A stretch of 64,000 nucleotides of DNA from Lepidodermella squamata (GCA_047495785.1 JBLDXI010000003.1:4402001-4466000), one strand, 5' to 3'. Positions 15,572-46,676 are shown, numbered from the stretch's first letter. Notes: generated by a model from the sequence alone, not told the origin. Program-made: numbers and translations.

Positions 15572-18500
15572 ATGGCCATAGTCAGCCTGAACCCACTCGC
15601 CGAACTTTACTTTCACGGGCGGATAACCCGCGAGGATGCCGAGGAGTTACTTCGCGAAGGACCGAATGGAAAATTTTTGCTGCGTAGCCGCGAAGTGGTG
15701 AATGCTGGTTTAGATATTTTTATTATTTCTGTCGCCTTCGATGGCCAAGTGCTGCACTATTCGATTGATCGGAGGCCGGACGGCACTTACAACATTCCAG
15801 GAGGCAAGCAGTTCATCGGTCCGGTAGAAATCGTTCGCTATCACACGGCATGTCAAGATGGCATTAAAACATTACTAACTCAGCCTGTGAATCGGCCTCC
15901 CGACCTCGGCGCCGTTGTTTATTGGGGTCTAACCACAGATATCGTCGAAGCGGAGCTTTTTCAATCAGGCGGGCTGAGCCGCGAAGCCGCACGTGATGAA
16001 GTTTTGCGAATTTTTGCTAACTCTTCATCTAATAAGCCGGTTCGGTTTCGGGAATTCCTTCGCCAGATGCAGTACTCGCGCACTTGGTTTCATGGTGTGG
16101 CAGGGCGTGAAGAGGCTGAACAGCGATTAGCGGTAAGAATCAATCTATTTTATTTTTATTTTGTAGATTTTTTATGGCTCACAATCTTTTGAATTTGAAA
16201 TTTTCTGGAATTTATTTGATTCGGGCCCTGATAATTCATTCTTCGGACCTCATTATCTCGAATCCAATGCCCGTTACATATTATCCTCCTGTAATTTTAA
16301 GCTGCCAGGATTTTGCAGAAGCACCTTAATTATTTTACTGATATTTTGCATTTTTTAAACAGAAATAGAAAAATGTGATTTAGTGATGCTAAGATTACTT
16401 TATTTGTTCAAGTTAAGTGACATGACGTGATTTGTTGCGTTTGTTTCTAGGCACTTGGCATGCGTTCTGGAACGTTTCTGATCCGGCGCAAAAAGGAGTG
16501 TTTCGTGCTGAGTGTCATCCACGATCGTCAGTTCAAGCACTATTTGATCCGCGAACGCCAGAACCCGTCGGGACACTCGTCGCCGCCCGCACCGGGCGTC
16601 TGTGGCTACGGCATGGACGGGGGCCCGATGTATTCGAGTCTCATTGAGGTGCGTGGCTTTATTTTTGTGTGCACTTGGCTCGAGAGGCGGCCGATCCGTC
16701 CCACCGGCAGCGCGCTAATATGTTGTGATAGTAATGCTGCTAGTGGGCCTTTCAGCAGGTAATACAGCAAAGTGGGCGGACGTCTGCGCTGCAATAACAA
16801 TAAACGCATTTCTCTGCGTAATCTACCTTGTTTGACGTGTTTGTTTCGTTTCCGCGCGCCGCGCTTCGCAATGTTTCTGCTGCACCTGTGTGGGAAGCTT
16901 TTCTTTCCTCCCTACGTGTGCCTGGCGTAGCGCTATTTTTCACTTGGCCGCGACGCGCTCGGGCAAGTGTCGTGCGATGACCATTTTATAACCCGCGGCC
17001 GACCACCACCGCAGCAGCAGCAGCAGGCTGATTAGCGCGCATTCATTACTCGCGGGCAAGAACTCGAGTAATTATTCGTGTCGTGCAGGCGTCGGACAAC
17101 AACAGCATAACAACAGCTTACAAGCTGCGCAAAAACACAACACAAAAAACTCAAAAACGGAAATATAAATAAACGGATTTTTTGCGTTTCTTTTCACAGC
17201 TTGTTCACTGGTATCATGCCTACTCAGACGGACTGCCGTGCGCGTTGCTGTATCCGTGCTCAAATGCCGCAAACCAGGACGAACAGAGCAACAGGCCGAG
17301 GGCGATTGAATCACCTAGTAAAGTATCCGTGGTGACAGACGTGTTGCCGTCGGCGAGAGACCAACAACAGTTGGTATCGCCACCGAAAGTTAAGCCTCAG
17401 GAACCAGTTGAACCAGACCCGGGGTCTCTGCCGAAACCTGTCCTCGACGAAGAGTTGGCGCGGAAGTTGGATGCGATTGCGCTAGAAATAAGCGTCGCCC
17501 AACCCGGCCAGAAACAGCCTGATGTTTTGAATCCGAACAAAATTCTGATAAGTGTTCAGCGACCCGCCGTCGCAGTCCGGCCAACACCAGTAATACCGAT
17601 GTGCAAACCTGCTAGCACGCCCATGCCGCCTGATCCACCCTCGGCTAAAGAACTGATGTTGCACAAAGACAAGGAGAAAAGCGACGTGGGTAAAGCGAGT
17701 CCGCCGGCTCCTGCGAAAATGGCTCCGACTAAACGGGTCATCAGGTTGCCGCAGTCTTTAGCGCGAAAGACGATGGCGCCTGCAGAACCCGGTCCTGTTG
17801 TAGGCGCCCGAGCGAATGGCCATGAACGGTCAACTTCGCCTTTCAAGCCTGTTACCACTCCTCAAAATTCGTCTTCTGGCTCGCTATCTCCGCCGACTCC
17901 GAAAATTACGCAGCAAAACTTACGCACCACCTTAATTTTTGACACGGTTCAAACTGTGGCGCAAACCAAGGAGGAATGGGACGAACCGGCTAGTGGAGGT
18001 GACAACCCGATTGCGGCAGTGAATGGGGTTTTTAGAAATGGCAATGGATCATCTCACAACAGCTCCACAAATGGAACTCTACCCCGAGCTGTAGCTCATA
18101 AACAGCCACAAAAAGAACCACCGTTACATCCCGAGCCGCTTATCCTCCAAGATTCGGTTACTAGATTAGACCCCGACTGGTTGGAAATTCATCAGACCAT
18201 AGGCCACGGGCATTTCGGCACCGTTTTATTCGGTTATTTGATTACGCCTCAGAATCGGATTCCTGTCGCGATTAAAAGTGTGCGCGAGACCGAGTCGCGG
18301 TGCGTAGAGAATTTGATTAAGGAGGCTACGACCATGTCGAATCTGACTCATCCGAATATCATCACCTTCTTCGGCGTTTGCTACATCGAAACCATTCTGT
18401 TAGTTATGGAATATGCGCCTCTGGGAACTTTGCAAAAATTTATCCGTGCCAATCGCAATTTTCCGGTCATCAAAATTGTCAAACTGATGATCCAAGTTGC

Positions 18501-19040
18501 TGATGCCATGCGATATCTCGAGAAAAACAAACTCGTTCATCGCGATTTGGCCTGTCGCAATGTGTTACTTTTGAACGAAGACCAGGCGAAAGTCAGCGAT
18601 TTCGGCATGTCGCGAGCCTTGGATGTTCAACGTGATTACTACAAAAGCCAAAACGTGGGAAAGTGGCCGCTGAAATGGTATCCTCCCGAGGCGATTTATT
18701 ACTGGAAATTCGATTCTAAGACTGATGTTTGGAGTTACGGAGTGACTCTATGGGAAGCGACAAGTTATGGCGCCCGGCCTTATCAAGGCATGGATGGATG
18801 GCAGGTTCTGAAATTCATCGAGAGCGGAAAACGTCTCGATCGCCCTCCAGCCTGTCCACCTCAATTGTACTGTCTTATGAACGAGTGCTGGAAATTCAAG
18901 TAAATTCTAGATTTTTTTGCGAGTGTCGAGCTTAACATATTTTTTTTAGATGTTCTGAGCGACCGACGTTCGAAGAGGTGCTTGTTACTATGCTTGATAT
19001 CGATTGCCAACTGGCAGCTAATGCTTCCGGCGAACCATAA
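15572..19040 (+). CDS. SYK: SYK/ZAP70-family tyrosine kinase (tandem SH2 + kinase)
   Basis: Exons ~15572-16132, 16451-16648, 17200-18899, 18949-19040. SH2-N (YFHGRITREDAEELL..GKFLLR), interdomain A, SH2-C (WFHG..GTFLIR), kinase with DYYKSQNVGKWPLKWYPPE; no ankyrin repeats, so not SHARK. Confidence 0.92.
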
Positions 19041-20171: not shown

Positions 20172-22151
20172 ATGACAAAAAATCGCCCTTTGCAGTATGG
20201 CATTGAAGACACACCGCCGATTCATGTGTGTATATTGCTGGGTTTTCAGCAGTTCCTTACAATGATGGGTGGTTCGATTGCCATGCCATTGATTATTGCC
20301 GAAGCGTGTTGTGTTGGACCTGATTTGGTCGGCCGTGCTCAAATCATGGGTACCCTCATGTTCGTCAATGGTCTCAGTTCGCTCATGCAAGTCTACTTCG
20401 GCGTTCGATTGCCAATATTACAAGGCGCGTCTTTTGGCTTCGTCGTTCCCATGATGGCGATGCAGCACTTGGACGACCACCAGTGTCCTACTGCTGAGGA
20501 TTATGCAACCTGGCGAATCTTCCCTGGTAGTTCCCATCATCGCAGCATTTGGATGTCTCGGTTGGTCGAAATTCAAGGCGCTATACTCCTTGCAGGGGTG
20601 CTTGAAGTTGTTATTGGATCTCTTGGCCTTGTTTCGTGCCTTGCCCGCTTCATCGGCCCACTGACTATCGCCCCAACGATGGCATTGATCGAGCTGTCGC
20701 TGATTCACGATGTCATCCATAATTACGCTTCGAAATTTTGGCCGATCTCTCTGCTGGCAATGAGCCTTGTTCTGCTGTGTACTCTTTACCTGCCTCGCAT
20801 TACCGTTCCTATTCCGTATTTTTCTGTTACTGCGCTGATTCGAGAGCGAAAATGTAAAGGCGAAGTTGCTTGGATCAGGATTTTCTCGCTCTTCCCAGTG
20901 TTGATGGCTGTCGGAATTTCTTGGGGTGTTTACGCAATTCTAGGCCTGGCCAACGCTCTACCTCAACAGGCCGTCAATGCATCCAGCAATTCCACGACTG
21001 CTCTGCCTGATATTTACATGTCTCAAGTGTCAGCCGCGCCTTGGTTTAACATACCCTACCCTGGCCAATGGGGCGTTCCTAGAATCAACGTTGCGTTGAC
21101 AGTTGGAATGTTTGCGGCCGTAATCGCTTCCATCATTGAATCGATTGGCGACTACTGCGTTTGCGCTACTATGTGTGGCGTCTCAAAACCGCCGAGCCAT
21201 GCTATTAATCGTGGAATAACTGTCGAAGGGTTGGGTTGCATATTAGCCGGAGCGTTTGGTTGCGGCCCAGGTGTTACCTCGTACTCGGAAAATGTCGGCG
21301 CTATTAGTTTAACTGGAGTTGCTTCTCGCCGTGTCATCACTTTCACTTCAATTATTTTGCTCATTTTCGGCTGTTTCACGAAGTTCGCAACGTTTTTCGT
21401 ATTGATCCCCGACCCGATTATTGGCGGAATTATGATCGCGATTCTATCTCTGGTCGCCGCTGTTGGTATTTCAAATCTGCAATACGTCGATTTGAATTCG
21501 ACGCGAAATCTCATGATTTTTGGTCTATCGATATTTCTCGGTCTGGGCATCCCAGACTGGATCAAAGGCAACCGTGATCTCATTAAAACCGGCTCGAATC
21601 TCTTCGATCAAATTGTCATCATGTTGCTATCGACTGGGATGTTTGTGGGTGGCTTGGTCGGTTTCGTTCTCGACAATACCGTGCCGAAAGACCCTGGCAG
21701 TGGGAAAGATTTCGGCTCTGATATTATTACCCCAACTTCTGAGAGTGATAGAATTTACGACTTGCCGTGGAAGTTCGGCGATTGGGTCCGCCGATGCTCA
21801 TTTTTCCGATTTCTTCCGATTTGCCCGACTTTTGAAGCTGACTGTGTGCACAATGCCTTCCGAAATTTAATCTCACGTCGCAATAGGCCCAGAGGAAATA
21901 ATTCGGATACCGCCTCGGGTAATGGACGGGAACCACCTCAAACAGCTGGAAACTTGGATATTTCTCGCAAAAGCTCTGATGTTCCATCTGTTGCGACGGT
22001 GAACGAAGCATTCGAGTCATCAATAAGTCGAACTGTAAGCGTTGCCTCGTTAACGCTGTCATTTTCCGGGATTCCATCAGCTACGGTTTCCGCCGCTCCT
22101 CGATTAGTCCCGCTCGCGTCGTCGAGCGATGAAAAATGGACTGATTTGTGA
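20172..22151 (+). CDS. SLC23/NAT (NCS2) nucleobase-ascorbate transporter, paralog 1 (intronless)
   Basis: GVRLPILQGASF, IESIGDY, HAINRGI, signature SYSENVGAISLTG, DLNSTRNL, LDNTVP. Confidence 0.95.
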   Translation: MTKNRPLQYGIEDTPPIHVCILLGFQQFLTMMGGSIAMPLIIAEACCVGPDLVGRAQIMGTLMFVNGLSSLMQVYFGVRLPILQGASFGFVVPMMAMQHLDDHQCPTAEDYATWRIFPGSSHHRSIWMSRLVEIQGAILLAGVLEVVIGSLGLVSCLARFIGPLTIAPTMALIELSLIHDVIHNYASKFWPISLLAMSLVLLCTLYLPRITVPIPYFSVTALIRERKCKGEVAWIRIFSLFPVLMAVGISWGVYAILGLANALPQQAVNASSNSTTALPDIYMSQVSAAPWFNIPYPGQWGVPRINVALTVGMFAAVIASIIESIGDYCVCATMCGVSKPPSHAINRGITVEGLGCILAGAFGCGPGVTSYSENVGAISLTGVASRRVITFTSIILLIFGCFTKFATFFVLIPDPIIGGIMIAILSLVAAVGISNLQYVDLNSTRNLMIFGLSIFLGLGIPDWIKGNRDLIKTGSNLFDQIVIMLLSTGMFVGGLVGFVLDNTVPKDPGSGKDFGSDIITPTSESDRIYDLPWKFGDWVRRCSFFRFLPICPTFEADCVHNAFRNLISRRNRPRGNNSDTASGNGREPPQTAGNLDISRKSSDVPSVATVNEAFESSISRTVSVASLTLSFSGIPSATVSAAPRLVPLASSSDEKWTDL

Positions 22152-22623
22152 CATTTTCGTACTTCACATGGCCCACTTAATCTCATTTTCATTTGCTCAA
22201 TGAACGCTCAAATCATATCTGCAAACATTATTTCTTCACTTTTATACAGAGTTTTAATTGAATTATCGCATGTGGTTGTTCCTGATGGTTGTGAATATTC
22301 TATTATATCATTTATGCGGAGTAATATTTTACCTGCGTGTGTGCCTTGTGAGTAGTTGTTGAGGCTCAAAAATAAACCGCCTTAATTATTCGTTTCTTTC
22401 GCTATCTAGTTTTTTAAAATAATTTTTGACTGATGCCGATACATCTGACGGTTTGTTTGTTTTGCATGGTTTTGTTGTGGTTTCTCTGCTTTGCTTTCGC
22501 TTTATTTCACGCAACCTTAGCGCCATTTCTTGTCATTCGAGCATTGCTAAAATGTTTGCCTGGGCTTATTATGATCCGCCTTCGCTTTTACTCTTTTCTA
22601 ATAACGCACTTTGTGGGTGAAAT

Positions 22624-24390
22624 ATGGCTGCTCATGGGTCCTCGTCGTCTGCTATCAAATTGGCATATTCGATTGATGACGCACCGCCGATCTATCTGTG
22701 CGCTTTTCTTGGCTTGCAGCAGTTCTTGACCATGATCGGCGGCACGATTGCCACCCCGCTCATGGTTGCTCAGGCAACTTGTGTTGGTGCGGATTTGGTC
22801 GGTCGAGCTCAAATTTTGGGAACTCTCATGCTTGTGAATGGCATCTGCACCTTGCTGCAAACGCTTCTGGGTGCGCGGCTACCCATCATCCAAGGCGCTT
22901 CTTTCACGTTCATTGCACCCATGATGGCCTTGCAAAACATGGATGAATTCAAGTGCCCGGATTTCAACGCTAAAAACTCGACGATAGAGATAGGAAGTGA
23001 CCAGCATCGTGCTATTTGGATGTCTCGTCTCGTTGAGATCCAGGGTGCAATAATGGTTGCGGGGGCTTTGGAAGCTCTTCTAGGTGCTATTGGTGCAGTT
23101 GGCATTCTCCTTCGCGCGATTGGCCCTTTGACTATCGCGCCGACTATCGGTTTGGTGGGGCTGTCTTTCGCAGATGATATCGTGTCAGGCTACGCTGCTA
23201 AATATTGGCCGATCGCTATTTTGTCTCTAAGCCTAGTGATTGGATTCAGCTTATACCTGAGTGAGGTAGCTATTCCAGTTCCGAAAATTATCATTGTCAA
23301 CCGTCGCTTGAAATTTAGCTGGGCCTGGGCGAAGATTTTTGGCCTGTTTCCAGTTTTGCTATCGATTATTTTAGCTTGGGCACTTTGTGCGATTCTCACA
23401 GCTTGCAATGTAATAGGGAAGTCGCCCTCTGATTATGGATACGAGGCTAGGACTGATATTCACCTTTACGAAATTTCAGCGGCTAATTGGATCCGTTTTC
23501 CGTATCCGGGTCAATGGGGCAGACCGAGAGTGTCTCTCGCTATAGTGCTAGGAATGATAGCCGGCATAATAGCCACCATGATTGAAACTATCGGAGATTT
23601 CTACGCTTGTGCCCGCCTTTGCGGTGTCCGACCGCCACCTGCTCATGCTATTAATCGCGGAATTTTCGTAGAAGGAGTCGCCTGCATTCTAGCCGGCGCG
23701 TTCGGGTGCGGCCCTGGTGTCACTTCGTACGCAGAAAATATTGGCGCGATTGCTATTACGCGAGTGGCGAGTCGACGCGTGTTCTATGTTGCTGCCTTTC
23801 TTCTCATTTTTTTCGGCTTCGTTACGAAAATTGCAGCTGTTTTCGTATTGATTCCTGACCCGATTCTAGGCGGCGTTTTAATGGCCATGTTATCTATGGT
23901 CTCAGCGGTTGGTTTTTCGAACCTGCAATTCATGGATTTCAATTCCACGCGAAACTTGCTGATTTTCGGGCTGTCAATGTTTCTCGGCATTTCGATGCCG
24001 ATGTGGGTGAAGAATAACCAGAAAATGATAAAAACCGGGTCGGAAGTATTTGACCAGGTGCTGATTGTTCTGCTGTCGACTGGTATGCTAATCGGGGGAT
24101 TGGTCGGTTTCTGTTTGGATAACACCGTACCAGGAGCTACTCGAGCTCAACGAGGCATGATGGCCTTTGAGGGGTCGCAATCTGTTGCGGATGAAGCCCT
24201 CACTGACTGCTATGAATTGCCACTGATCGGCAAGTATATCGCTAGGTGCTCCATCAGCCGTTTTGTCCCTATTTCGCCGACTTACGATCCGTCATCATTT
24301 CGGTGCCGCCAAACGGCTGCTGTTGAGCCTCACAGCGAACCGATTCAGATGGACGAAGTTACCGATAAGATAGCCCGCACCGAACTTTGA
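22624..24390 (+). CDS. SLC23/NAT transporter, paralog 2 (intronless)
   Basis: Same motifs; signature SYAENIGAIAITR. Confidence 0.95.
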   Translation: MAAHGSSSSAIKLAYSIDDAPPIYLCAFLGLQQFLTMIGGTIATPLMVAQATCVGADLVGRAQILGTLMLVNGICTLLQTLLGARLPIIQGASFTFIAPMMALQNMDEFKCPDFNAKNSTIEIGSDQHRAIWMSRLVEIQGAIMVAGALEALLGAIGAVGILLRAIGPLTIAPTIGLVGLSFADDIVSGYAAKYWPIAILSLSLVIGFSLYLSEVAIPVPKIIIVNRRLKFSWAWAKIFGLFPVLLSIILAWALCAILTACNVIGKSPSDYGYEARTDIHLYEISAANWIRFPYPGQWGRPRVSLAIVLGMIAGIIATMIETIGDFYACARLCGVRPPPAHAINRGIFVEGVACILAGAFGCGPGVTSYAENIGAIAITRVASRRVFYVAAFLLIFFGFVTKIAAVFVLIPDPILGGVLMAMLSMVSAVGFSNLQFMDFNSTRNLLIFGLSMFLGISMPMWVKNNQKMIKTGSEVFDQVLIVLLSTGMLIGGLVGFCLDNTVPGATRAQRGMMAFEGSQSVADEALTDCYELPLIGKYIARCSISRFVPISPTYDPSSFRCRQTAAVEPHSEPIQMDEVTDKIARTEL

Positions 24391-24550: not shown

Positions 24551-27500
24551 ATGGCGGACTCGAAATATTTTTCAACAACGAAGAAAGGTGAAATTTACGA
24601 GCTGAAGGCCGAGCTCAACAGCGATCGTAAAGACAAGCGCAAAGAGGCTGTGAAGAAGGTCATTGCCAGCATGACTGTCGGCAAGGATGTATCTGCTCTG
24701 TTCCCTGATGTCGTCAACTGCATGCAAACCGACAACCTCGAGCTGAAGAAGCTCGTCTATCTATACTTGATGAATTACGCGAAGAGCCAGCCTGACCTCG
24801 CTATCATGGCTGTTAACACTTTCGTGAAAGATTGCGATGACCCTAATCCTTTGATCCGTGCCTTGGCTGTTCGCACAATGGGTTGCATTCGCGTTGAAAA
24901 AATCACCGAGGTGAGTAGAAAATAACTTTTAAGGAGGATTTTTTATTAATTTATCCATTATTTTTCAGTATTTGTGCGAACCACTGCGGAAGTGCCTGAA
25001 GGACGAAGATCCTTACGTGCGCAAAACTGCGGCCGTTTGCGTTGCCAAGCTTCATGATATCAACCCGCAATTGGTCGAAGACCAGGGTTTCCTTGACTTG
25101 CTTCGCGATTTGCTGTCCGACTCCAATCCTATGGTTGTCGCTAATGCAGTTGCGGCGATTTGTGAAATCGCCGAGGCTAGTCCTTCAGCTGGTCGCATGC
25201 TTGAGCTGAACTCGCAGACCGTCAACAAGTTGCTAACCGCGTTGAACGAATGCACCGAATGGGGTCAGGTCTTCATCCTCGACTCGATTTCAAACTACAC
25301 ACCGAAAGATGATAAAGAGGCTCAGAACATTTGCGAGCGTGTCGCTCCTCGTTTGGCCCATGCTAACGCCGCTGTCGTCCTGTCGGCTGTCAAGGTCATT
25401 ATCAAGTTCTTGGAAATGATTGACCCATCGAGCGATTTCGTTACCGGGCTGACCCGCAAACTCGCCCCGCCGCTCGTCACCTTGCTGTCGGGCGAACCTG
25501 AAATTCAGTACGTTGCCCTGCGCAACATCAACTTGATTGTTCAGAAGCGATCTGACATTCTGAAGAACGAACTCAAGGTTTTCTTTGTCAAGTACAACGA
25601 CCCGATTTACGTCAAGTTGGAGAAGTTGGACATTATGATTCGTCTGACAAATGCCTCCAACATCCAACAAGTTTTGGCCGAGTTGAAAGAATACGCTACT
25701 GAAGTCGATGTCGACTTTGTCCGTCGTGCCGTCCGCGCCATTGGCCGTTGCGCTATTAAGGTGGAGTCAGCGGCTGAGAAGTGCGTCCAAACGCTGCAGG
25801 ATTTGATCCAAACCAAAGTCAATTACGTCGTTCAGGAGGCGATTGTCGTTATTAAGGACATTTTCCGCAAGTACCCGAACCAGTACGAACGTATCATTGG
25901 CACGCTGTGTGAGAACTTGGAGTCGCTGGACGAGCCGGAGGCCAAGGCGTCGATGATCTGGATTTTGGGTGAATACGCCGAGCGTATCGATAACGCTGAC
26001 GAATTGTTGGAAACGTTTTTGACGACCTTCCACGACGAGAACACGCAGGTGCAACTGCAGCTTCTCACTGCGATTGTCAAGCTTTTCTTGAAGAAGCCGG
26101 CCGATACGCAGCAGCTGGTCCAACAGGTTCTGTCCCTGTCAACACAGGACAGCGACAACCCTGACTTGCGCGACCGTGGTTACATTTACTGGCGTCTGCT
26201 CAGCACGGATCCGCAGTTGGCGAAGGAGGTGGTTCTGGCGGAGAAGCCGCTGATTTCAGAGGAGACCGACTTGCTGGAGCCGACCCTCCTTGATGAGCTG
26301 TTGTGCCACATTGCTAGCCTGGCTTCAGTCTACCACAAACCCCCGTCGGCTTTCATTGAAGGCCGCGTGCCTTTGAATCGCCGCACTCTGCCGCCCCGTG
26401 CCCCGGGTAGTGCCCAGTCGCCGACCAACGAGGCCCAGGCGGCGGCCACTGCCCGTCCGGACGCTCGAGCTGCGCCGACCGTCATCCCGGGTGCCGACTC
26501 CGCCGTCGCTGACCTCTTGACCCTCGACCTGGGCGGTTCATCGATGATGCCCCCCGCCAACATCTCCGTCCCGCCGCCCGGCGCCGGCATGTCGTCGGCC
26601 GGCTTCGACCTCCTCTCCGACATCGATAGCCTTATCGGCGGCGGCCCAGCTGGTTCGAGCAACCTCGACTCCACCACGCCCGTCCCAACGAACCCGATGC
26701 AGGCGCCCTTCGGAGCCGCCCCCTCGATGTACTCGAACGCGCCCGGCCCGTTCGGCGGCGCTGCCCCGGTCGCAGCTGCCGGCGGTCTCGGCGACCTCGG
26801 CTCGCTCTTCTCCACCTCGACGGCCACCGCCGGCCAGTTCTACGCCCCGCCGAAAGAGGTCTGGCTACCCGCTACCCGTGCAAAGGGCCTCGAAGTTCGC
26901 GGCACATTCGCCCGTCGCGGCGGTAACATCTACATGGACCTTAGCTTCTCGAACAAAGCCCTTCAGGCCATGTCCGACTTCGCGATTCAGTTCAACAAAA
27001 ACAGCTTCGGCCTATCACCCGCACAGCCTCTCAAAGTTGCCTCGCCGCTGGTTCCGAACCAGAACGCCGACGCGCAGCTGCCGTTGGCGACTGGCGGGCC
27101 TGTCCAAAAGATGGACCCGTTGAACAATTTGCAGGTCGCCGTTAAGAACAACGTCGACGTCTTCTATTTCGCGAGTGCCATCCCGTACCACGTGTATTTC
27201 TGCGAAGACGGTCAGATGGATAAGCACATGTTCATCGAGACGTGGAAGCAGATTCCGGGCCAAAACGAGGCCAATTTCACGTTGACCGCCCACTCGTCGC
27301 TGGCATCGGGCGGCTCCGACGCCATCGAAACTCGCCTGCGGGCTAACAACGTGTTCACGATCAACAAGCGATCGGTTGACGGGCAGGAGATGCTGTACCA
27401 GTCGATCAAGTTCGTCAACGGTATCTGGGTTCTAGCCGAGCTCAAGTTCTCGCCTGGCAACGCAACTGTCACGCTCAGCCTGAAGTCGAGCCAGCCCGTC

Positions 27501-27551
27501 GTGTACCCTGGCGTTAAATCGGCCTACGAGATGCTTCTAGCCGCTGCCTGA
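24551..27551 (+). CDS. AP1B1: AP-1/AP-2 complex beta adaptin
   Basis: [25 protein letters not shown]-terminus; single intron 24911-24968 (ITE|YLCEPL); trunk, hinge with clathrin box LLTLD, appendage domains. Invertebrates typically share one beta1/beta2 subunit. Confidence 0.96.
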
Positions 27552-28980: not shown

Positions 28981-31046
28981 ATGACGAGTGAATCGCCGAG
29001 AGCGATTAATCTTGTGTATTCGATCAATTCGACACCTCCAGTTTACCTATGCATTTTGCTAGGCATTCAGCAGTTCTTGACGACGGTGGTGTCAAGTATC
29101 GCAACGCCTGCCATTTTGGCTGATTCGATTTGTATGGGTTGGGATGTGCAGGGTCGGTCTGAACTCATGGGTTCTTTGATGGTAGTCAACGGGGTTTCGA
29201 CGCTCATTCAAACATATTTCGGAGTGCGATTACCGATTATTCAGGGTCCATCTGCTGCGTTTCTCGCGCCGATTTTCGCATTACAAAGCATCGAAGCATT
29301 CAAATGCCCCGCCGAAGGTTCGTACGAGGTCGGTAGCGATGAACACAGGGCTATATGGATGTCACGGTTGACCGTAGTTCAAGGTATAAGTGTTGGAGAT
29401 TCACTTTCTATCACAAGGTTTCACCTGAATTATGTTATAGGCGCTGTGCTTTTATCCGCTTGTCTTGAAACATTCATCGGGTTAACTGGCCTTGTCGGCG
29501 TGTTTTTCAAATACGTCGGACCGCTGACCATTGCGCCAACAACAGCTTTGATCGGTTTCTGTCTTATCGAAGATGGCATCGAGCATTATGCATCAAAACA
29601 CTTCCCGATCGCCTTCCTTACAATTTTCTTTGTTGTACTTTTTGCGTTGTTCCTCGCCGGGGTTGAAGTTCCCCTGCCAGCGTTCCGAATCAACGCTTGT
29701 CCATTCTCATTCAATGTACAAATGACTAAACAGCCGATTTTCACGCTATTCCCTGTTTTGGCTGCTATCCTAGTGTCTTGGGCATTTTGTGCAATTTTAA
29801 CGGCGGCTGGTGCCTTCCCCGATTCACCAACCAGCGGATATGGTTACGCGGCCAGAACTGATATACGACTGTCTCAAGTCGCAGCTACCCCTTGGTTTCG
29901 TATTCCCTATCCTGGACAGTGGGGAGTGCCTCAATTCTTCCTGGCAACAATTTTAGGAATGTTTGCCGGTACATTCGCGTCTATTGTCGAATCTATAGGT
30001 GATTGGTTCCTTTATTCCCCTCTCTTCTTCCAATATAATCTTCCGATCTTTTGCCAGGTGACTATTGTGCGTGTGCCAGGCTTTGCAGTGTGCCACGGCC
30101 GCCTCCACACGCTATAAACCGCGGAATAGCCGCCGAAGGCTTGGGGTGTATTCTGTCTGGAATAATCGGCTCTGGGCCAGGAGTTACATCCTACTCGGAT
30201 AGCATCGGGGCCATAGGCATCACTCGAGTTGCCTCGCGACATGTCGTTTTCGTAACAAGCATCCTCCTTATTTTGTTTGGTTGCTTCACAAAGCTCACTG
30301 CAGTTTTTGTCTCTATCCCTGATCCTGTGATCGGAGGAATTTTTGTGCCAACGTTCGGTATGGTAGCTGCGGTCGGATTTTCGAATCTTCAATTTGTTGA
30401 CCTCAATTCAACACGAAATTTACTAATTTTTGGATTGTCCATGTTTCTCGGCCTTGCTACCCCGCTTTGGGTCAGGCAAAATGCACAGCAGATTAAAACT
30501 GGTTCAGAAATAGCTGATCAAGTTCTGGTGGTTCTGCTGTCGACTGGGATGCTTGTCGGAGGAACAATCGGCTTCGTTTTGGACAACACCGTACCTGGTG
30601 CGACGAAAAAGCAACGCGGCTTGGATGCTATAGAAAATGCATTGGAACCTAGCGATGACTCAAATGTTAACCAGAACCAGCCAATTAGTCATGATTGCTA
30701 TGACCTGCCGTTTATCGGGACATGGATTGCAACTAAACCCTGGCTGCGTTACGTTCCTTTCTCGCCAACTTTCTCGCCAGCAAACTTATCTCATCTAAAC
30801 CCTGTCCACATTATTCAGGCTGTTAAGCGTCAATCTGAGGTTATCGCATTTTCATCAACCGGAAATGTTGAGCCGATCGAATCGAATGATCCTCATCCTT
30901 TGGCAGAAGACAGCTCAAGAAATAAGGCAGTTTTCAGTGAGGTTAAAAGCATGGTTGGCGTGAAGGCGAATGAGATCGAAATAGCCGAAGATGAAACACA
31001 CAAGAAGAGACCTTTGTTTTTTCATCGTCGAGCATTTTTCTCTTGA
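28981..31046 (+). CDS. SLC23/NAT transporter, paralog 3 (two introns)
   Basis: ORFs 28981-30117 and 30051-31046 joined by introns 29384-29440 and 29999-30057; variant signature SYSDSIGAIGITR. Confidence 0.93.
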
Positions 31047-37052: not shown

Positions 37053-39576
37053 ATGGCTGGACAGCGAACCGCCGTCGCCAAGGCAACCGCAGATCCACCT
37101 GTTGACGATGGCAGTGATGCTCAGCATGCAGAGGCGAGAGGCCACTGGTCGAAAGGCATCGAGTTCTTCCTGAGCTGCGTTGGCTACGCTGTGGGAAGTA
37201 AGTGACCCCGCATTTCAATTTTGAATCAGATAAATATTTTAAACTGGACGCAGTCGGAAATATATGGCGCTTCCCTTATATGTGCATCAAGAATGGCGGT
37301 GGTGCTTTCCTAATTCCATTTTTCCTATTTCTATTCATCTGTGGAATGTAAGGATCTTTCGGAGTATGAAAATCGCTCTAATTTCGTTTCTTTTCAAGGC
37401 CCTTGTTTTTTCTTGAGCTCATATTAGGCCAATTTTCCAATCTCTCGCCAATCACCCTGTGGAACATCTGCCCGCTATTTCGTGGGATCGGGTTAGGAAT
37501 GGTCATAGTTTCTGGAATTGTCTGCATTTACTTCAACGTGATAATGGCTTGGTCACTCTACTACCTCTGCATGTCTGTGTGGCCGGTTTTGCCGTGGACG
37601 AGTTGCAATAATAGGTGGAACACTGACAAGTGCCAGGAAAGCTTCAGACCGCAAGCTGTCTTTTCTCCCAACAATTTCAGCAACGACTCATCGTTCGCTA
37701 ATTTTTCGAACATTACCAGCAACGTGACAGTGGTGATGAATGCAACTTACTCGCCCTCGGAGGAATTTTGGCGCAATTACATCTTGGGCCAAACCGACTC
37801 GCCGGACGACGTCGGCAACATCAACTGGCCGCTGCTCGCCTGTCTGTTCCTTGCTTGGGTCGGCGTTTTCTTGTGCATGTTCAAGGGCGTTCAAACGAGT
37901 GGCAAAGTTGTCTACGTCACAGCAGTCGCTCCATACATTTTCCTAGTCATTCTACTTATTCGCGGCGTGACCTTACCTGGTGCCGCAGATGGCTTAATTT
38001 TCTTTCTCAAGCCTGATTTTGCAAAACTGCTCAACTACCAAGTGTGGATTGACGCATGCTTGCAAATTTTCTTCTCCCTCGGACCAGCTTGGGGCGGTCT
38101 CATCACAATGGCATCGTTCAACAAATTCAATTACAATTGCTACCGGTAAATGCCTTAAATTCAATTTCAATTCGCAAATTTCTGGTATTTTTCATCGTAG
38201 AGATGCATTCTTAGTTAGCTTCATCGATGCAGGCACTTGCTTCGTTGGCGGGCTTGTTATTTTTTCGGTTTTGGGAAATATGGCCTACAACACTGGCGCA
38301 AAAGTCGAGCATTTCAATCGAGCTGGCCCTGGGCTGGCTTTCATCGTTTACCCTGCTGCGTTGAACCATTTACCATTTCCGCAACTATGGGCAGTGCTCT
38401 TCTTTTCTATGCTTCTTACCCTTGGAATTGATACTCAGGTATGAATAATTTCTTGTCTAAAAGTTTCCTAACATTTACTACTCCAGTTTGGCATGTTCGA
38501 GACTGTTGTCAGTGGCGTTTTAGATCAATTCAAAGGCTTGCACAAACACAAAACATTAGTCATTGCCTCCCTGGCCTTGCTCGAGTTTCTCCTTGGCATA
38601 CCTTTTGTAACCGGGGTGAGTTACTTCATCGATGCCTGAAGCTATCATCCCCAATTAAACTCTTTATCAGGCTGGCTACTACTACTTCCAAGTTGTTGAT
38701 CATTATGCCGCGGCTTTATCTGTAACTCTGATGGCGCTATTGGAATGCTTAGTTATAAGCTATCTCTATGGTAATCGAGTTTTGAACTTAGAAAACATCA
38801 ATTCAAGTTCATTTCATTTAGGACTGGATCGTCTATTCGACGACATGGAACTGATGTTTCAGAAGCGTCCAAGTTGGCTGTGGAAAGTTTTCTGGATGGC
38901 CATTACACCTTTTTTGCTATTCGTCAGTCTCCCTCGTTAAATTGATTCAAATTTAAAGCTGTCCATTTTACAGGTGATTGTTATTAGCGGCATGGCGCAG
39001 CTATCGGAGCCAACTTACTCAGTGATTGTTGAAAGCATCGTTCCCACTGATCCGCCGAATTTGATCGTAAACACAGGTGGGGTAATTATGCCGACGAATG
39101 TGACTTATCCGACGTACGTTCAACGCGATAACCTGCCCTATCCTCGCTGGTTGATTGTTCTTGGGTGGATCTGTGCCATGTCGTCACTGCTAGTCATACC
39201 CTTGCTCGCCATTATCGGGGTTGCTCGAACTAAGGGCAGGACACTCCGAGACAGACTCATCATTCTAACACGCCCAACTCCGTTGTGGTGCCCATCACCT
39301 CCTGAGCTGAAAGCTGCATATATCGAAAAGTACCGTGAGCATAATCACTCATTCGAATTGGCCGCAGCGAATAGGAGAGCGAATGATGCAAATGATGGAG
39401 CTATGGATGGTGAGCAGCTTCTTACCTCAAGAAGCGCAAAAAAGCTGCCTCCGCCATCCTACGATGTTGTTTCTGACGCAAACATATCTTCTAGGCCAGT
39501 TACACCGACACCGGCTGCCATAATCTTATCGGGGGAGCAAACCTTGGACGATCCCAAGTCCACAATTTACGTTTAA
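37053..39576 (+). CDS. SLC6 Na+/Cl- dependent amino-acid transporter (glycine/proline-like)
   Basis: [29 protein letters not shown] (Gly, not the monoamine Asp, in TM1); TSGKVVY; [29 protein letters not shown]; [10 protein letters not shown]; seven short GT-AG introns join in frame. Confidence 0.93.
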
Positions 39577-41069: not shown

Positions 41070-41549
41070 TTCCCGTGGAAATAATTTATCATGATTTCCG
41101 AGGAAATTACGAAAAATATACGCCTTCAACTTGAAATACTGGTTCTTATGTTGATTATTCCGTATTAAAGCAAATATTCTCTTGAATCCGGTGCGGTTGA
41201 TATATATATATTTCTATGAAAGTTCTTATCATTTCCATGGATAAATCTAATAAACCTTACAGATGCTGTTGCTCCTACCGTTTAACTGAATATATGATAG
41301 GTATATGATTACAAGAAAGTTGCTCACTATTAGAGTGGAAAATGCAAAATTTCCAGGAATTTTCCAAGGAAATATTGTTATCTCTACTCAAGGGTCCACA
41401 TATATATAGTATTTGCAACGTTTTTTCTTATCTCGTGTCGCAATTCTCCACGTAATAACTCACTGACTTTATCAGGAATCAATAGGGTTATCCAGAATTC
41501 TGTGAACAATCCTACGATTCACTAGTATAGGCGTTCCCGGATATAAATA
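41070..41549 (+). promoter_or_regulatory. Promoter of STAT-like gene with clustered GAS (TTCN3-4GAA) sites, kB-like site and TATA box
   Basis: N3 sites at 41212, 41351, 41498; N4 sites at 41096, 41177, 41362; N5 site at 41070; GGAATTTTCC at 41356-41365; TATAAATA at 41542. Confidence 0.65.
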
Positions 41550-41577
41550 GTGGGCTGCACTAGTGAAAAGTGTAAAA

Positions 41578-44309
41578 ATGCCTCTATCCAAGCTACAGTT
41601 GCAGAGATTGGCAAATACTTCGGAAGCTGATAGCTTCAAGGAAATCTACCCGGAGAGGAAAGACTTTCAATTGCGTCAACTTTTAAGTGATTGGATTGCC
41701 CTAATATACGATGTCTGGTTCTGTTGGAATTCAGAAGCTTCTGCGTGTCGAGATCAAGAAAACTCGACCCAGCTTGTCACGTCTGCAATCGATTTCATCG
41801 AAAGTCATTACACCAATGCGAATGAAGGCTCCATGGAAGAATTAAAGGTATTTCTTTAAATATGGGGTTGACGCATATCATTTAATGGTTAACGGTTTTT
41901 AGTCAACTGCCTCTTGCCCCGTCAAAGCATTCCGATTTTTATCTGAGCTAAAGCGTCGTTTGTTCCTCGAAAGCAAGCTATATCATGAATTGTTTCTGGA
42001 GCGGGGAATAGCCGTGCTTGGCGAAGCAACAGGGCGTTCACTTGGTTATGGTGGCGACATTGACGAAGCAACTGAGAAGTTTGTCCAAGCGGCAGACATC
42101 ATTTGCCTTACGCTAAGCTCAGATGCTATGTTTGCGATGGACTACTCGCAAATTGAGAATTCATTTGATGTTTGCATCAGCAATTTGCTGGGCTGCGTCA
42201 ACAGTTTGTTTTGGTATTCCGAGTTGTTTCGGCATCAAATGAGTAGGTCTATTTTCGGCGAACCAATGACTGCAGATCTCGATCACTTGCAATGGGCTTA
42301 TGACACGGCCAGTAAGTCGCTGAATGATATGATCCACATAATGGAATCTGCCACTCAAAAGCTGCATGGTCACTTGGCATTTCTTTGGCCAAAACTGCAA
42401 ATGTCAATCGAAAAGTGTTCGTACTTTATAGGAAACTTCTTCCTTCAGCATTGTCTAGTTTTGGAAAGCGAAGTTCCATTGATTCAAAGAACGGAACGAG
42501 AATTTCGCAGCCCTCCAATTCTCAGAATGCTATGTCCAAGTATAATATTTCATGGAAACTTGTACGATGAGAAGTTGTACGAGAAGCGCGTTTTCAATCC
42601 GTTCATATACGACGAGGATTCAAGAAACATTGCAACTAGTACCAATGAGAGCAATGAAGATTCGGACATCTCTGAAATTCAAATGTTTTCGTCAAATGAC
42701 ATATGGATAGCAGCGAAGAAGCTCGAGGTCCGCGTTCGAGTCTATTCACTTTCGGGTTCTGCAGACTATGCCGCTTTCGTCAACTCGGGTGAACCAGCTA
42801 GTTTAATGTATTGCCCCACCAGACGGCTGTGCTATGCTGGAATTGAAGCCATTCGCCTTATTGAAACGCGGCCCGGTATGAAAAAAACTACAAAGCGGAG
42901 AGCCGCTGAGCGAACGTTGACCGAACAAAGCCCACATTTGATTGCACTTGGCTTCAAGTGTGATTTCAGCTTTTCTGCCCATATTCGTTGCGCCGATGAA
43001 GGTTCGATGTTCTGCAAAAGCATATCTGCGCCTTTCGAATTGTCACCGATGAAAAATCGCAAGAAATCAACTGGATCTTTGTTGGTATTTTGGAACCGCT
43101 ACTTCAACCAAATATTGCCGTCTATTGAAAGAAAGTCAACTTTGGCTTGCAATGACGTTGATGACCTTTTCAGCATCTCTTGGGCGAATGTCAAGTTGCA
43201 TTTAAACTCTCAAGACCTTATGCTGGATTACGATAATGAATGCCTTGTTCATGAAATTGCGACTGCTCTTTTCGGCAATGACATTCAAGAATGCCTCCCT
43301 AGCGAACACCATAATTCGGAAGGTCTTTGCGAGTGCTTCGATCGTGAAATGCTTTCCTGGGAGAGATTATCTTCTGTGGCGGCTGTGCTGAGATCAAGCC
43401 AGCAAACTAGTAGTTTGAATCTCCGAATCGTTGAACGGATTTTAAATGGCTATTTCGAAATTAAGGTAAGATTAGGCATAACAATTTTAATAATAAACTT
43501 GACGATTTCTTCCATCTGGCAGAATTGTCAATCTATACCTGAACAAGCTTGTTGGTCGCACGTGAAGCGTATACTGAACGCTATTTGGAAATCTCATCTC
43601 GGATCTGATTTGAAGCCTGAAAACATCCACCATCTATCTGAACGGTTATTCGCTCCAGCTCCGGCCCAACCGTGCGCATTTGCGACAGCCGATCACGAAC
43701 AAGGACTCTCATTTGACAGCTGTAAATGCTTCGACGACAGCATGGTCTCTTTGCAAAAGTTGATAGATGGTGACTTATTTTTCAAACCTGGGAAACAATC
43801 AGGCGGCTTCAGCTTCTGGGAGTGGTTTTCGCAAGGCTTGTCTTTGATAGACAGTGCATGGCTTCGAAATTATTGGCCAGATGCGATTGCGGGCTTTGTT
43901 TCGCATGAGTATTGTCTTTCTGCTTTACGTCGCGAGAAAGCGGGAATGGTAATTTTTTGCCTATTCATCACATTTTTTTTAATTATTCATGTCCATCAGT
44001 TTCTCATCCGTTTAAGTCAATCTGATGCTGGAACAATTGTTATACCGTATGTTTAGCTTTTTTCTTGTTGAGATTGCCTTCATATAAGTTGTTTACCACA
44101 GGCATACAGTCATAGACCGATTTGGTAGGATACGAGTTGAAAGTTACAAGGATTCTAGGTGGCTAAGGCCGACCATGTCTCGCACGTTCGGACAGGCGAT
44201 CATGTCGCTGCAACCTTTACAGGTTTTATGGTCCACTCGCCAATCAATATGCGACCTTGTATTGGATAAGGAACGTCCTCGAAACTTTTACTTTAGCACT
44301 GGCGGCTGA
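41578..44309 (+). CDS. Highly divergent STAT5/6-like protein (N-domain, DBD-like, duplicated linker, SH2; no pY tail)
   Basis: N-domain IYPERKDFQLRQLLSDWI; DBD-like LMYCPTRRLCYAGIEAIRL..KRRAAERTLTEQ..ISAPF..VFWNRYF; linker/SH2 FSFWEWF..LRNYWPDAIAGFVSH..GM|FLIRLSQSDAG. Introns 41849-41902, 43466-43522, 43949-43999, ~44048-44101; ends RPRNFYFSTGG*. Confidence 0.85.
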
Positions 44310-46676
44310 AATTAATTGAATAAAATAATATACGATAGGCACCGACAGATTGCTGATTCCACAGATATATTTTTGGTTTTTTATTTCGGGACGCGATGCA
44401 AAAAATAGAGGAGAAAGCGTGATTATTTTATAATGGCGATGGCGATATTATCAGCAGTTTGGCATCCGGTGATGAAGATGCCTTGACGTTTAATGCAGCC
44501 CACTCGGCTGAATAGTCTCAGATGTCGGAAGTCATTTTATCTGGGAGAAAATTTTCATCGCAAGCGCTGACATATTTTGTTGTCAATCTAGATTGTTTAA
44601 TAAGAAATGTATTAAAAAATCGTGTAATTAGTAGTTTTTGGTAGGTTCGCGCGTTGTAACAGGGAAGTTTGGATGTAGTAACAGGGAAGATTGAATAAAT
44701 TGCGGCTATTAATAGCCTGATGTCGACGACGTGCGTCGTCATAAGAAATAGTGGTCTCCGATATAGAATCATCAGAAATAGAAACCAGGAATCTGGTCTC
44801 CGAGCAGGTAGGACTAAGAAAGACACCAGCAACGGATATGAAATGATGAAATGAAATGATTTTATTGTTTTACTTCCCCGCGACTGAGCGTCTATACCCT
44901 TTCGGGTTTTGAGGAAGGCAAAGGCTAAGCAAACCAAAAGAATCAGTCACCCGCCCCCACGTCCGAGAGTATCTTGCTTTTGTTGTAAAATTCAAAATTT
45001 TCCAAAGTCTCGACAATTTTACGCCATTCGTCTCGATCTAGTGCAGTTGTTTCGGTCAACAGTTATTTCGATAATTTCGGTTATATTGCTACCATCTTTA
45101 CGAGGTCTGCCACGGGACCCGTCAGTTTTTTCCTTATGATATTTTCGGTTGTAAGACCCACTCTTCTCAGACTTCTTTCTACCGAATCTAGCCACCTAGT
45201 TCGAGGTCTCAACGCAACGGATATGGAAATGAAAATATGTTGATTCTTCAAGCTCAGACAAATAGTCAGGGCAGGTTCCAGAGACTTGTAGTCGAGATTC
45301 AATATTTCAGCAAAACAGCGTCAAAGGTCTACGAGCCTAAATATTGGAACACTCCTTATTAGCCGGTGGGTAAGCCTGCAAAAGATCTTACTCACATTGA
45401 AGCCCGGCTACAATACTGCGGAGCTAGAATTTATGGCCCAGCCATAGGTTTAGCCTCAGCCATTTCAATTTCTCAAATTGTCCTTTACACGAAATCGGCA
45501 ATTTTCGCCCTATCCTTCGCAGCTGGCAGTGTTTCAGCTGTGATCGCTGAGTCAGACGTGCAGACGCCTTGCATTGACAAGGCCTTAGTGGCATTTTGCG
45601 AACTTATCTATTCGGCTATGATTGCCCTATTTCTGTTGTTCCCTACCAAACATCAAGGCAGTAACTAAAAGTGTAGAAAAAGTTGCAGTGTCAAACCAGA
45701 TCTGATGGAAATGAAGGAATTTGAATTTGACTCAGGAACTATGGTAAGTTTGTGCTGGAAGTGTGGGCCCTGGGCAAATTGGACAGTTGGTTGTTAGGTT
45801 GTTGATTTAACGTTTTTGAACTTTTCAAACTCGGTTGCCATTGGTTCAGGTTTAGCGGTTCAAGCTGAACCTGCAGCGTGCATGGCAGCGTGCTGTTGAT
45901 GTTCACATTCCTTATCTTCGTGAATTGAAAAGCCCAAACTCATCCGGTCATGTTATATAGCAATGTTTTGACAAATGCAAGCTCAAGATCAAGCTGTTGA
46001 TATTCATATGAAAAACACAATATTAAGGACAAATAAAAAAGATGATTTTCGTTTCGTTCGTTCAGAAGTGGGTTAGGGTTTTTGAGGAAAAAGAGCTACG
46101 ATCTTACCGATCCTTCGGTTGTGTCAAGCCAGCTAGAAAAGCTAGAAAAGCTAGCCAGCCTTCCTAGATGTTCACGCCAAGATGCGCGCTATCTATCGAT
46201 TGACATGCATCAAGAAATTGCTGTGAGCGAATTTTCGAGCGAAATGCAAGGTTTCGGCCGCTCCTAGTTGCCCCTGAGCCTGAGATGCGCTTCAGTTGGA
46301 ACTTGAAAAGTAGGTTCGTTTTTTCATGTATGCTAACTAGTGAACTACTCAATCCTAACACCTAAGAATCAGGTCGATTAACGCTTTGTTTGCGTTCTTC
46401 TTCGCTTCTTCGCTTCTTTGCTACGAGATGCCTCGGCTAAGCAGTATTTGTTAAAAGCGCTGCATCATTGTATTATGACGGAAAATTAGGTAGTAATGAT
46501 TATTTGATAATAAAATTAATGACTTTTTCGGCCTTGATCGCACATGACCGCGTGTGTCCGCGCGCGCGCATTATCTGCACCATAACGGATTTTGAATTGA
46601 ATGTCCCGGCTGCGGTCAGTCCCTGATTCTTAATCGCAGATTCTGCCTTGAGCTGGCCAACAGCTTATTTTACTAA

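Follow-up and report, generated by a model that had tools for sequence, protein, structure and literature searches.

What would a STAT do that stops short of the tyrosine through which its relatives are activated? The question is raised by a locus at 41070-44309 of a 64,000-nt stretch of Lepidodermella squamata DNA (hereafter the window, along which all positions are counted), which a preliminary description had read as a candidate STAT decoy behind a promoter of STAT-type and kappaB sites. The locus holds a gene of five exons on the + strand (41578-44309; Table 1), with four introns, all GT..AG, of 55, 57, 51 and 55 nt, and a product of 837 aa. By its sequence the gene is securely a member of the STAT family, and a highly derived one, because its linker and the start of its SH2 domain match both the Pfam STAT_linker profile (PF21354; 37.1 bits against a cut-off of 27, E 4.4e-9) and human STAT6, the closest solved relative in a phmmer search of the PDB (linker end and SH2 start, E 9e-6). 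These two matches bear out the linker segment named in the preliminary description; STAT_linker is the sole Pfam domain recognised.

Other STAT parts are preserved unevenly. The N-terminal half of the SH2 domain lies within the range of the STAT6 match, and FLIRLSQS aligns to FLLRFSDS of canonical STAT fragments with the phosphotyrosine-binding Arg conserved, as the preliminary description had it. That description had claimed a whole SH2 segment; its first half stands, but the second is only weakly similar, scoring 14.3 bits with a family hidden Markov model (HMM) against at most 5.0 for 2000 shuffles, and 9.2 against 7.2 bits with an HMM from which the nearest relative was left out. Pfam SH2 gave no match on the open reading frame (ORF) pieces. 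The coiled-coil region has no Pfam match and is homologous to that of a STAT on the metagenomic contig L001 (tblastn E 5e-13). The proposed N-domain comes down to a 17-aa LRxLLxDWI match to the L001 STAT at the equivalent position (53% identity, E 0.001), but nothing beyond it was recovered: exon 1 has no Pfam STAT_int match, and the N-terminus is about 40 aa shorter than that of L001. The N-terminal half of the linker is present twice in tandem (43169-43465 and 43523-43800; BLASTP E 1e-5). Both copies carry a Cys/His-rich insert (C-x-C-F-D), and intron 2 sits exactly between them.

The protein ends where its SH2 domain ends. Its spliced C-terminus was aligned with P0015 (NNGY), P0028 (PNGY), the fish STAT6 fragment P0014 and P0002 (TGRY), the canonical fragments in this alignment including the whole SH2 domain and the activation site. 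LQVLW falls opposite L(K/N)xLYP, and the final NFYF opposite the conserved (H/Y/F)Y at the close of the SH2 domain. The frame ends five residues past the conserved FY, in RPRNFYFSTGG and a stop codon at 44307-44309, which leaves it 9-11 residues short of the NGY/GRY tyrosine of P0015, P0028 and P0002. A canonical tail tyrosine was sought as a G-Y motif about 24-32 residues past the SH2 LYP, and the frame stops before any such G-Y. No residues follow the SH2 domain in which a transactivation domain could lie; in the relative P0002 there are about 130 more. The stop at the SH2 end, the absence of a tail with the activating tyrosine and the absence of a transactivation domain, all noted in the preliminary description, are therefore upheld by the alignment. 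Searching the 64-kb window by tblastn with the relative's tail found no tail-like exon, an alternative 3′ exon with a GY-type tail being what that description had named as fatal to its reading; tblastn likewise found no second STAT copy in the window. Stop codon and frame are identical in a DNA run that is about 0.6% diverged from the window (X2).

The region expected to read DNA has fared no better. In the place of SLP(I/M/V)VV(I/T)VH(G/N)(S/N)Q, found in L001 and in canonical fragments, the gene has SAPFELSPMKNR (43025-43060), which agrees with the altered base-reading segment reported before. The DNA-binding domain (DBD)-like region as a whole has no Pfam match at E<=10, and its similarity to the L001 DBD is not significant by Smith-Waterman comparison (z 1.7, p 0.055), nor is the hhalign result (E 0.17). 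The top alignments are collinear with the end of a STAT DBD, setting SAPFELSPMKNR...FWNRYF opposite SLPxVVxVHxxQ...WDNAF, and S-x-P and W-x-x-x-F alone are kept. Judged from these alignments, the region is degenerate and its homology positional only; the label DBD-like holds for its collinear position, but the region resembles no STAT DBD significantly.

Relatives are few. Neither exon 2 nor the linker/SH2 region had a match in word-indexed homologue searches, and exon 2 stayed below the recognition threshold of an atlas feature search. An exhaustive search of 1.84 billion representative proteins gave five matches at E<=0.001, all of them metagenomic ORF fragments and none a full-length STAT-like protein. 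Two of these, P0003 and P0002, are pieces of one gene on the contigs L001/L002. The L001 gene is a more ordinary STAT, with weak Pfam matches to STAT_int, STAT_bind, STAT_linker and SH2, a DBD reading SLPMVVTVHNSQ...WDNYF, the TGRY tyrosine at the canonical distance past the SH2 domain and a long Q/P-rich C-terminus. Closer is P0001, on the contig L003, which at 699 nt is too short to show the tail: it is 47% identical over exon 3, has both flanking intron positions in common with our gene and also carries the C-x-C insert, and its intron 3 is stop-free (read-through is seen in P0001). A profile search and a metagenome locus scan found canonical STAT fragments at no more than about 30% full-length identity, none closer than L003. 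In a tree of the linker and SH2 start the gene joins L003 first (support 100/99) and L001 next (94/89), with the canonical fragments standing apart; it is thus a member of a small divergent STAT clade, the most derived one so far known. On the maximum-likelihood (ML) tree its branch measures 1.25 against 0.14 for L003, an asymmetry that relative-rate counts do not confirm (16 vs 9, p 0.23). Beyond the STAT gene, there is no synteny with the L001 contig.

The gene is expressed. In one shallow run flagged as RNA (X1, depth 1-23), cover is confined to 41820-44395, with zero depth over both single-copy flanks, and the splice joint of the last intron (44046>44102) is present; the preliminary description had asked for expression data, and these show a transcribed gene with its last intron spliced. 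RNA contigs run unbroken from 44200 to 44319 across the TGA, and cover is zero beyond the 44212-44395 bin. The gene is not a processed copy, because the same joint was not found in the DNA run X2. Since introns 2 (43466-43522, 57 nt) and 3 (43949-43999, 51 nt) are in frame and stop-free, a 698-aa ORF extends across three exons; retention of these introns would add 19 and 17 residues, respectively, without truncating the protein. The donor of intron 4 (44047-44101), GTATGT, falls within codons still translated in L001 (IVIPYV), which is intronless there, and intron 4 could thus have been gained from former coding sequence.

The gene is also under constraint, unevenly along its length. Over the stretch compared, the window and X2 differ at 20 sites, 16 of them coding. 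The numbers are small; the coding differences are 8 synonymous and 8 non-synonymous, with no indels. The resulting ratio of non-synonymous to synonymous polymorphism (pN/pS) is 0.27 (binomial p 0.01 against neutrality), away from the dN/dS near 1 that the preliminary description had named as contrary evidence. All 8 amino-acid changes fall within aa 330-598, that is, the DBD and the first half-linker (p 4e-4; Fisher p 0.026), three in the DBD-like region and five in the first linker repeat. By comparison, the coiled coil, second linker repeat and SH2 domain together have 0 amino-acid changes against 5 synonymous ones, and the N-domain has no amino-acid change. This pattern suggests constraint on the interaction modules and nearly neutral change in the DNA-binding part and first linker repeat, and it is in keeping with a protein that operates by way of these modules and not by reading DNA. 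The gene is a functional, expressed, lineage-specific and strongly derived member of the STAT family. X2 has full depth and about 0.7% differences over the gene body; at 44396-44579 and 45684-46400 its depth is halved (about 54-79 vs ~106 over the gene), with zero differences, which suggests haplotype structure around the gene in that sample. The absence of promoter differences from X2 was considered as a sign of constraint and rejected, since differences are just as absent from the downstream flank and the depth shows haplotype structure.

Upstream of the gene lies a homotypic cluster of STAT-type sites. The 508 bp before the ATG (41070-41577) hold eight palindromes, three TTCN3GAA, three TTCN4GAA and two TTCN5GAA, the maximum over all 508-bp windows of the 64 kb (mean 0.99). 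Four of the six TTCC(N1-3)GGAA sites of the 64-kb window lie at 41070-41371, within 302 bp, a clustering reached in 0/5000 second-order Markov simulations; the cluster is statistically real. Four or five of the palindromes are copies of a longer (A)TTTCC-N1-3-GGAAAT motif, and the region is single-copy by X2 DNA depth. The preliminary description had placed a cluster here rightly, but counted seven palindromes. Its kappaB component falls: the promoter holds no strict GGGRNWYYCC, and the one relaxed match, at 41356, arises from two abutting palindromes. A heat-shock element was also considered and rejected, because no TTCN2GAA is present in the region. The cluster is absent upstream of the more canonical relative L001.

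Table 1. Features of the STAT-family gene and its upstream region.
Feature	Position	Strand	Detail or basis
8 TTC(N3-5)GAA palindromes	41070-41506		Starts 41070, 41096, 41125, 41177, 41212, 41351, 41362, 41498
TATA-like TATAAATA	41542-41549	+	36 nt 5′ of ATG; read from sequence, start without RNA support
Exon 1 (aa 1-90), reduced N-domain remnant with LRQLLSDWI	41578-41847	+	Frame, splice sites, short motif match
Exon 2 (whole)	41903-43465	+	Gene model
Exon 2, first part (aa 91-296), coiled-coil region	41903-42520	+	tblastn vs L001 STAT
Exon 2, middle (aa ~297-512), degenerate DBD-like region with acidic insert	42521-43168	+	Non-significant collinear alignments
Exon 2, end, first (extra) copy of linker N-terminal half, Cys/His-rich insert	43169-43465	+	BLASTP vs second copy
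Exon 3 (aa 612-753), canonical-type linker (FSFWEWF) and SH2 helix A (GFVSHE)	43523-43948	+	Pfam STAT_linker, PDB STAT6, alignment
Exon 4, SH2 strand B, FLIRLSQS with phosphotyrosine-binding Arg	44000-44046	+	Gene model, alignment (FLIRLSQS = 44000-44023)
Exon 5, divergent SH2 C-terminal half; last Tyr Y832 44289-44291; stop TGA 44307-44309	44102-44309	+	RNA splice joint, alignment
AATAAA poly(A) signal	44319-44324	+	10 nt after stop, from sequence

How might such a protein work? The reading that we favour, tentatively, is that it may serve as a decoy or negative-feedback regulator of STAT signalling. Without the tail tyrosine, the protein would not be activatable by tail phosphorylation and reciprocal SH2-phosphotyrosine dimerisation, and with a degenerate DNA-reading segment it would be unlikely to clamp gamma-activated-site (GAS) DNA as a canonical dimer. 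With canonical activation closed to it and GAS clamping unlikely, action through protein contacts seems most likely: the SH2 domain might dock on phospho-receptor sites or on phosphorylated canonical STAT, the coiled coil and N-domain might contact partners, and these contacts would modulate, and probably dampen, STAT signalling. The upstream palindromes would let active STAT drive the gene, which would close a negative feedback loop. Non-phosphorylatable STATs are classical dominant negatives, and a pathway-induced inhibitor would fit a gene that has lost its acceptor and its DNA-reading segment while retaining an SH2 core and a constrained coiled coil. What survives of the decoy proposed in the preliminary description is a constrained, expressed, tail-less and DBD-degenerate gene behind a real palindrome cluster, but not its kappaB part. 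A narrower version, in which a germline-encoded "inhibitory STAT" paralogue induced through the GAS cluster blocks receptor docking or poisons STAT dimers, is possible and somewhat more doubtful.

Several points weigh against a decoy. Its induction, its binding partners and its inhibitory effect are all things that we infer. A decoy presupposes a canonical STAT, and the search for homologues in this genome covered the 64-kb window. Factors other than STATs can also bind TTCC..GGAA palindromes. The SH2 C-terminal half is weakly conserved and the helix A Lys is replaced by His, so that phosphotyrosine binding is not assured. Expression is seen in a single shallow RNA run, in which exon 1 has zero cover. 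The checks by HMMER and AlphaFold that the preliminary description had proposed put STAT_linker above its cut-off but left the other STAT profiles unmatched, and the AlphaFold 2 (AF2) model of exon 2, built on a two-row alignment, is unusable (pLDDT 37, pTM 0.24), its five long helices over the coiled-coil part being drawn at that low confidence. Finally, the closest precedent, STA-2 of C. elegans, is a positive regulator and not a decoy.

That precedent defines the main rival, namely that the gene encodes a non-canonical positive factor of the STA-2 type, a fast-evolved paralogue independent of JAK and of tail phosphorylation, perhaps acting on a membrane platform and possibly together with the SLC6 transporter encoded upstream. 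STA-2 (F58E6.1) is a divergent STAT-like protein that fits HMMs poorly, has a very short C-terminus and lacks a transactivation domain; that duplicated STATs may neofunctionalise rapidly, and that divergent short-tailed paralogues exist, has been documented (PMC3670131). STA-2 binds the SLC6 transporter SNF-12 (PMC3309975). Both genes are lineage-specific and fast-evolved, with short C-termini, and the SLC6 link of STA-2 is echoed here by an SLC6/SNF gene on the same strand, whose end lies about 2 kb upstream; the basic KNRKK of the remodelled DBD loop could still contact DNA. Set against this, the adjacency was noticed post hoc and is a lead, not evidence, and a DBD and first linker repeat that look close to neutral speak against DNA reading. 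STA-2 itself lacks an N-domain, regulates antimicrobial peptide genes positively and is not known to have a GAS-type cluster at its promoter, and no specific sequence relation between it and our gene was detected among the five matches, none of which is full-length STAT-like. On balance, we consider a positive factor of this kind unlikely, though nearer to the decoy in plausibility than any other alternative.

Less probable again is that we are dealing with the lineage's only or orthologous STAT, activated in an altered way (through Y832 as a phospho-site, or independently of tyrosine) and autoregulated through the palindromes. A Tyr does lie 6 residues from the C-terminus, and the tree places the gene with L003 and L001, its sole relatives among the 1.8 billion proteins searched. 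However, Y832 aligns with the structural (H/Y/F)Y of the SH2 end and not with G-Y, the loss of the base-reading segment makes binding to its own GAS-type sites unlikely, and the long ML branch is as for a derived copy, although the relative-rate counts are not significant. There is also little chance that the gene is a duplicate drifting to loss, transcribed and open in frame and without a function of its own. Its extreme divergence, with five database matches and atlas recognition below threshold, and the nearly neutral look of the DBD and first linker repeat would suit such a fate, but the 837-aa frame is intact over four canonical introns in two diverged genomes without indels, and neither the low pN/pS nor the absence of amino-acid changes in the coiled coil and second linker/SH2 would be expected of it. 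The weakest alternative, that an unseen 3′ exon supplies a normal tail and the tail-less form is one isoform, would take advantage of the shallow cover of the one RNA run and has a parallel in vertebrate STAT beta-type isoforms made by 3′ alternative splicing, but is highly improbable given that RNA contigs at 44200-44319 cross the stop, immediately behind which come AATAAA and a drop of cover to zero, that the relative's tail finds nothing downstream, and that the next 0.8 kb contains a high-copy repeat.

A decoy or feedback regulator, still the reading we prefer, can be set beside known systems. With canonical metazoan STATs the gene shares domain order, the motifs FSFWEWF, GFVSxE and FLxRxSxS with its Arg, and a coiled coil whose homologue belongs to a relative with weak STAT_int, STAT_bind and SH2 matches. 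It differs from them in having no tail tyrosine or transactivation domain, an unrecognisable DBD in which SLPVVVIVH is lost, a duplicated half-linker, a reduced N-domain and a very divergent SH2 C-terminal half. The L001 relative, in contrast, keeps SLPMVVTVHNSQ, the TGRY tail and the Q/P-rich C-terminus, and lacks the upstream cluster. By functional analogy only, the gene resembles Smad6/7 and the dominant-negative STATs with a Tyr-to-Phe change or of beta-isoform type, in that the phospho-acceptor is lost and the DNA-binding domain degenerate; as in Smad6/7-type logic, the partner-binding domain is kept and induction by the restrained pathway would be predicted. Unlike inhibitory SMADs, which have an unrelated fold, it is an inhibitor only by our reading, and natural STAT beta isoforms, unlike this protein, keep the tyrosine.

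The surroundings add observations of their own. Pieces of the SLC6/SNF transporter gene lie at 37403-39576 on the + strand (Pfam SNF E 6e-83, three ORF pieces); the gene continues about 115 aa past the last profile position and ends about 2 kb before the STAT-like ATG. Further upstream is a tyrosine kinase gene (15572-18903, +; SH2 15572-16192, kinase domain 17182-18903), which was considered as a JAK, 23 kb from the STAT-like gene, and rejected, being of the Syk/ZAP-70 (Shark) type (ZAP-70 E 3e-75). Three tandem xanthine/uracil/vitamin C permease (SVCT-like) genes follow at 20172-24390 and 28981-31046 (+), their array interrupted by a beta-adaptin gene (24972-27551). Downstream, at 44764-45131, lies a high-copy repeat with many loose ends, where X2 depth climbs from the gene's ~106 to about 2600-3300; a 139-aa ORF on the minus strand (44518-44937) overlaps it.

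What the locus means for the family depends on the reading. Known feedback on JAK/STAT signalling includes SOCS proteins, phosphatases, PIAS, short receptors and N-terminally truncated STAT isoforms; to our knowledge, a counterpart of the inhibitory SMADs is a class of feedback that has not been described for this pathway. Divergent short-tailed STAT paralogues are already known as a kind, and what is new here is the combination: the tyrosine is absent, the DBD degenerate and the half-linker duplicated, and a GAS-type cluster lies upstream. If the decoy reading is true, a separate gene linked to STAT-type sites would encode a STAT mimic incapable of being phosphorylated or of reading DNA. Mimicry by a dedicated paralogue would then join the list of feedback mechanisms, and the gene would serve as a natural experiment to learn which STAT domains are enough to inhibit. 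If the gene instead encodes a positive factor like STA-2, tail-independent STAT signalling would have arisen more than once. On both readings, a STAT is seen here to have diverged very far with constraint kept on its coiled coil and SH2 core.

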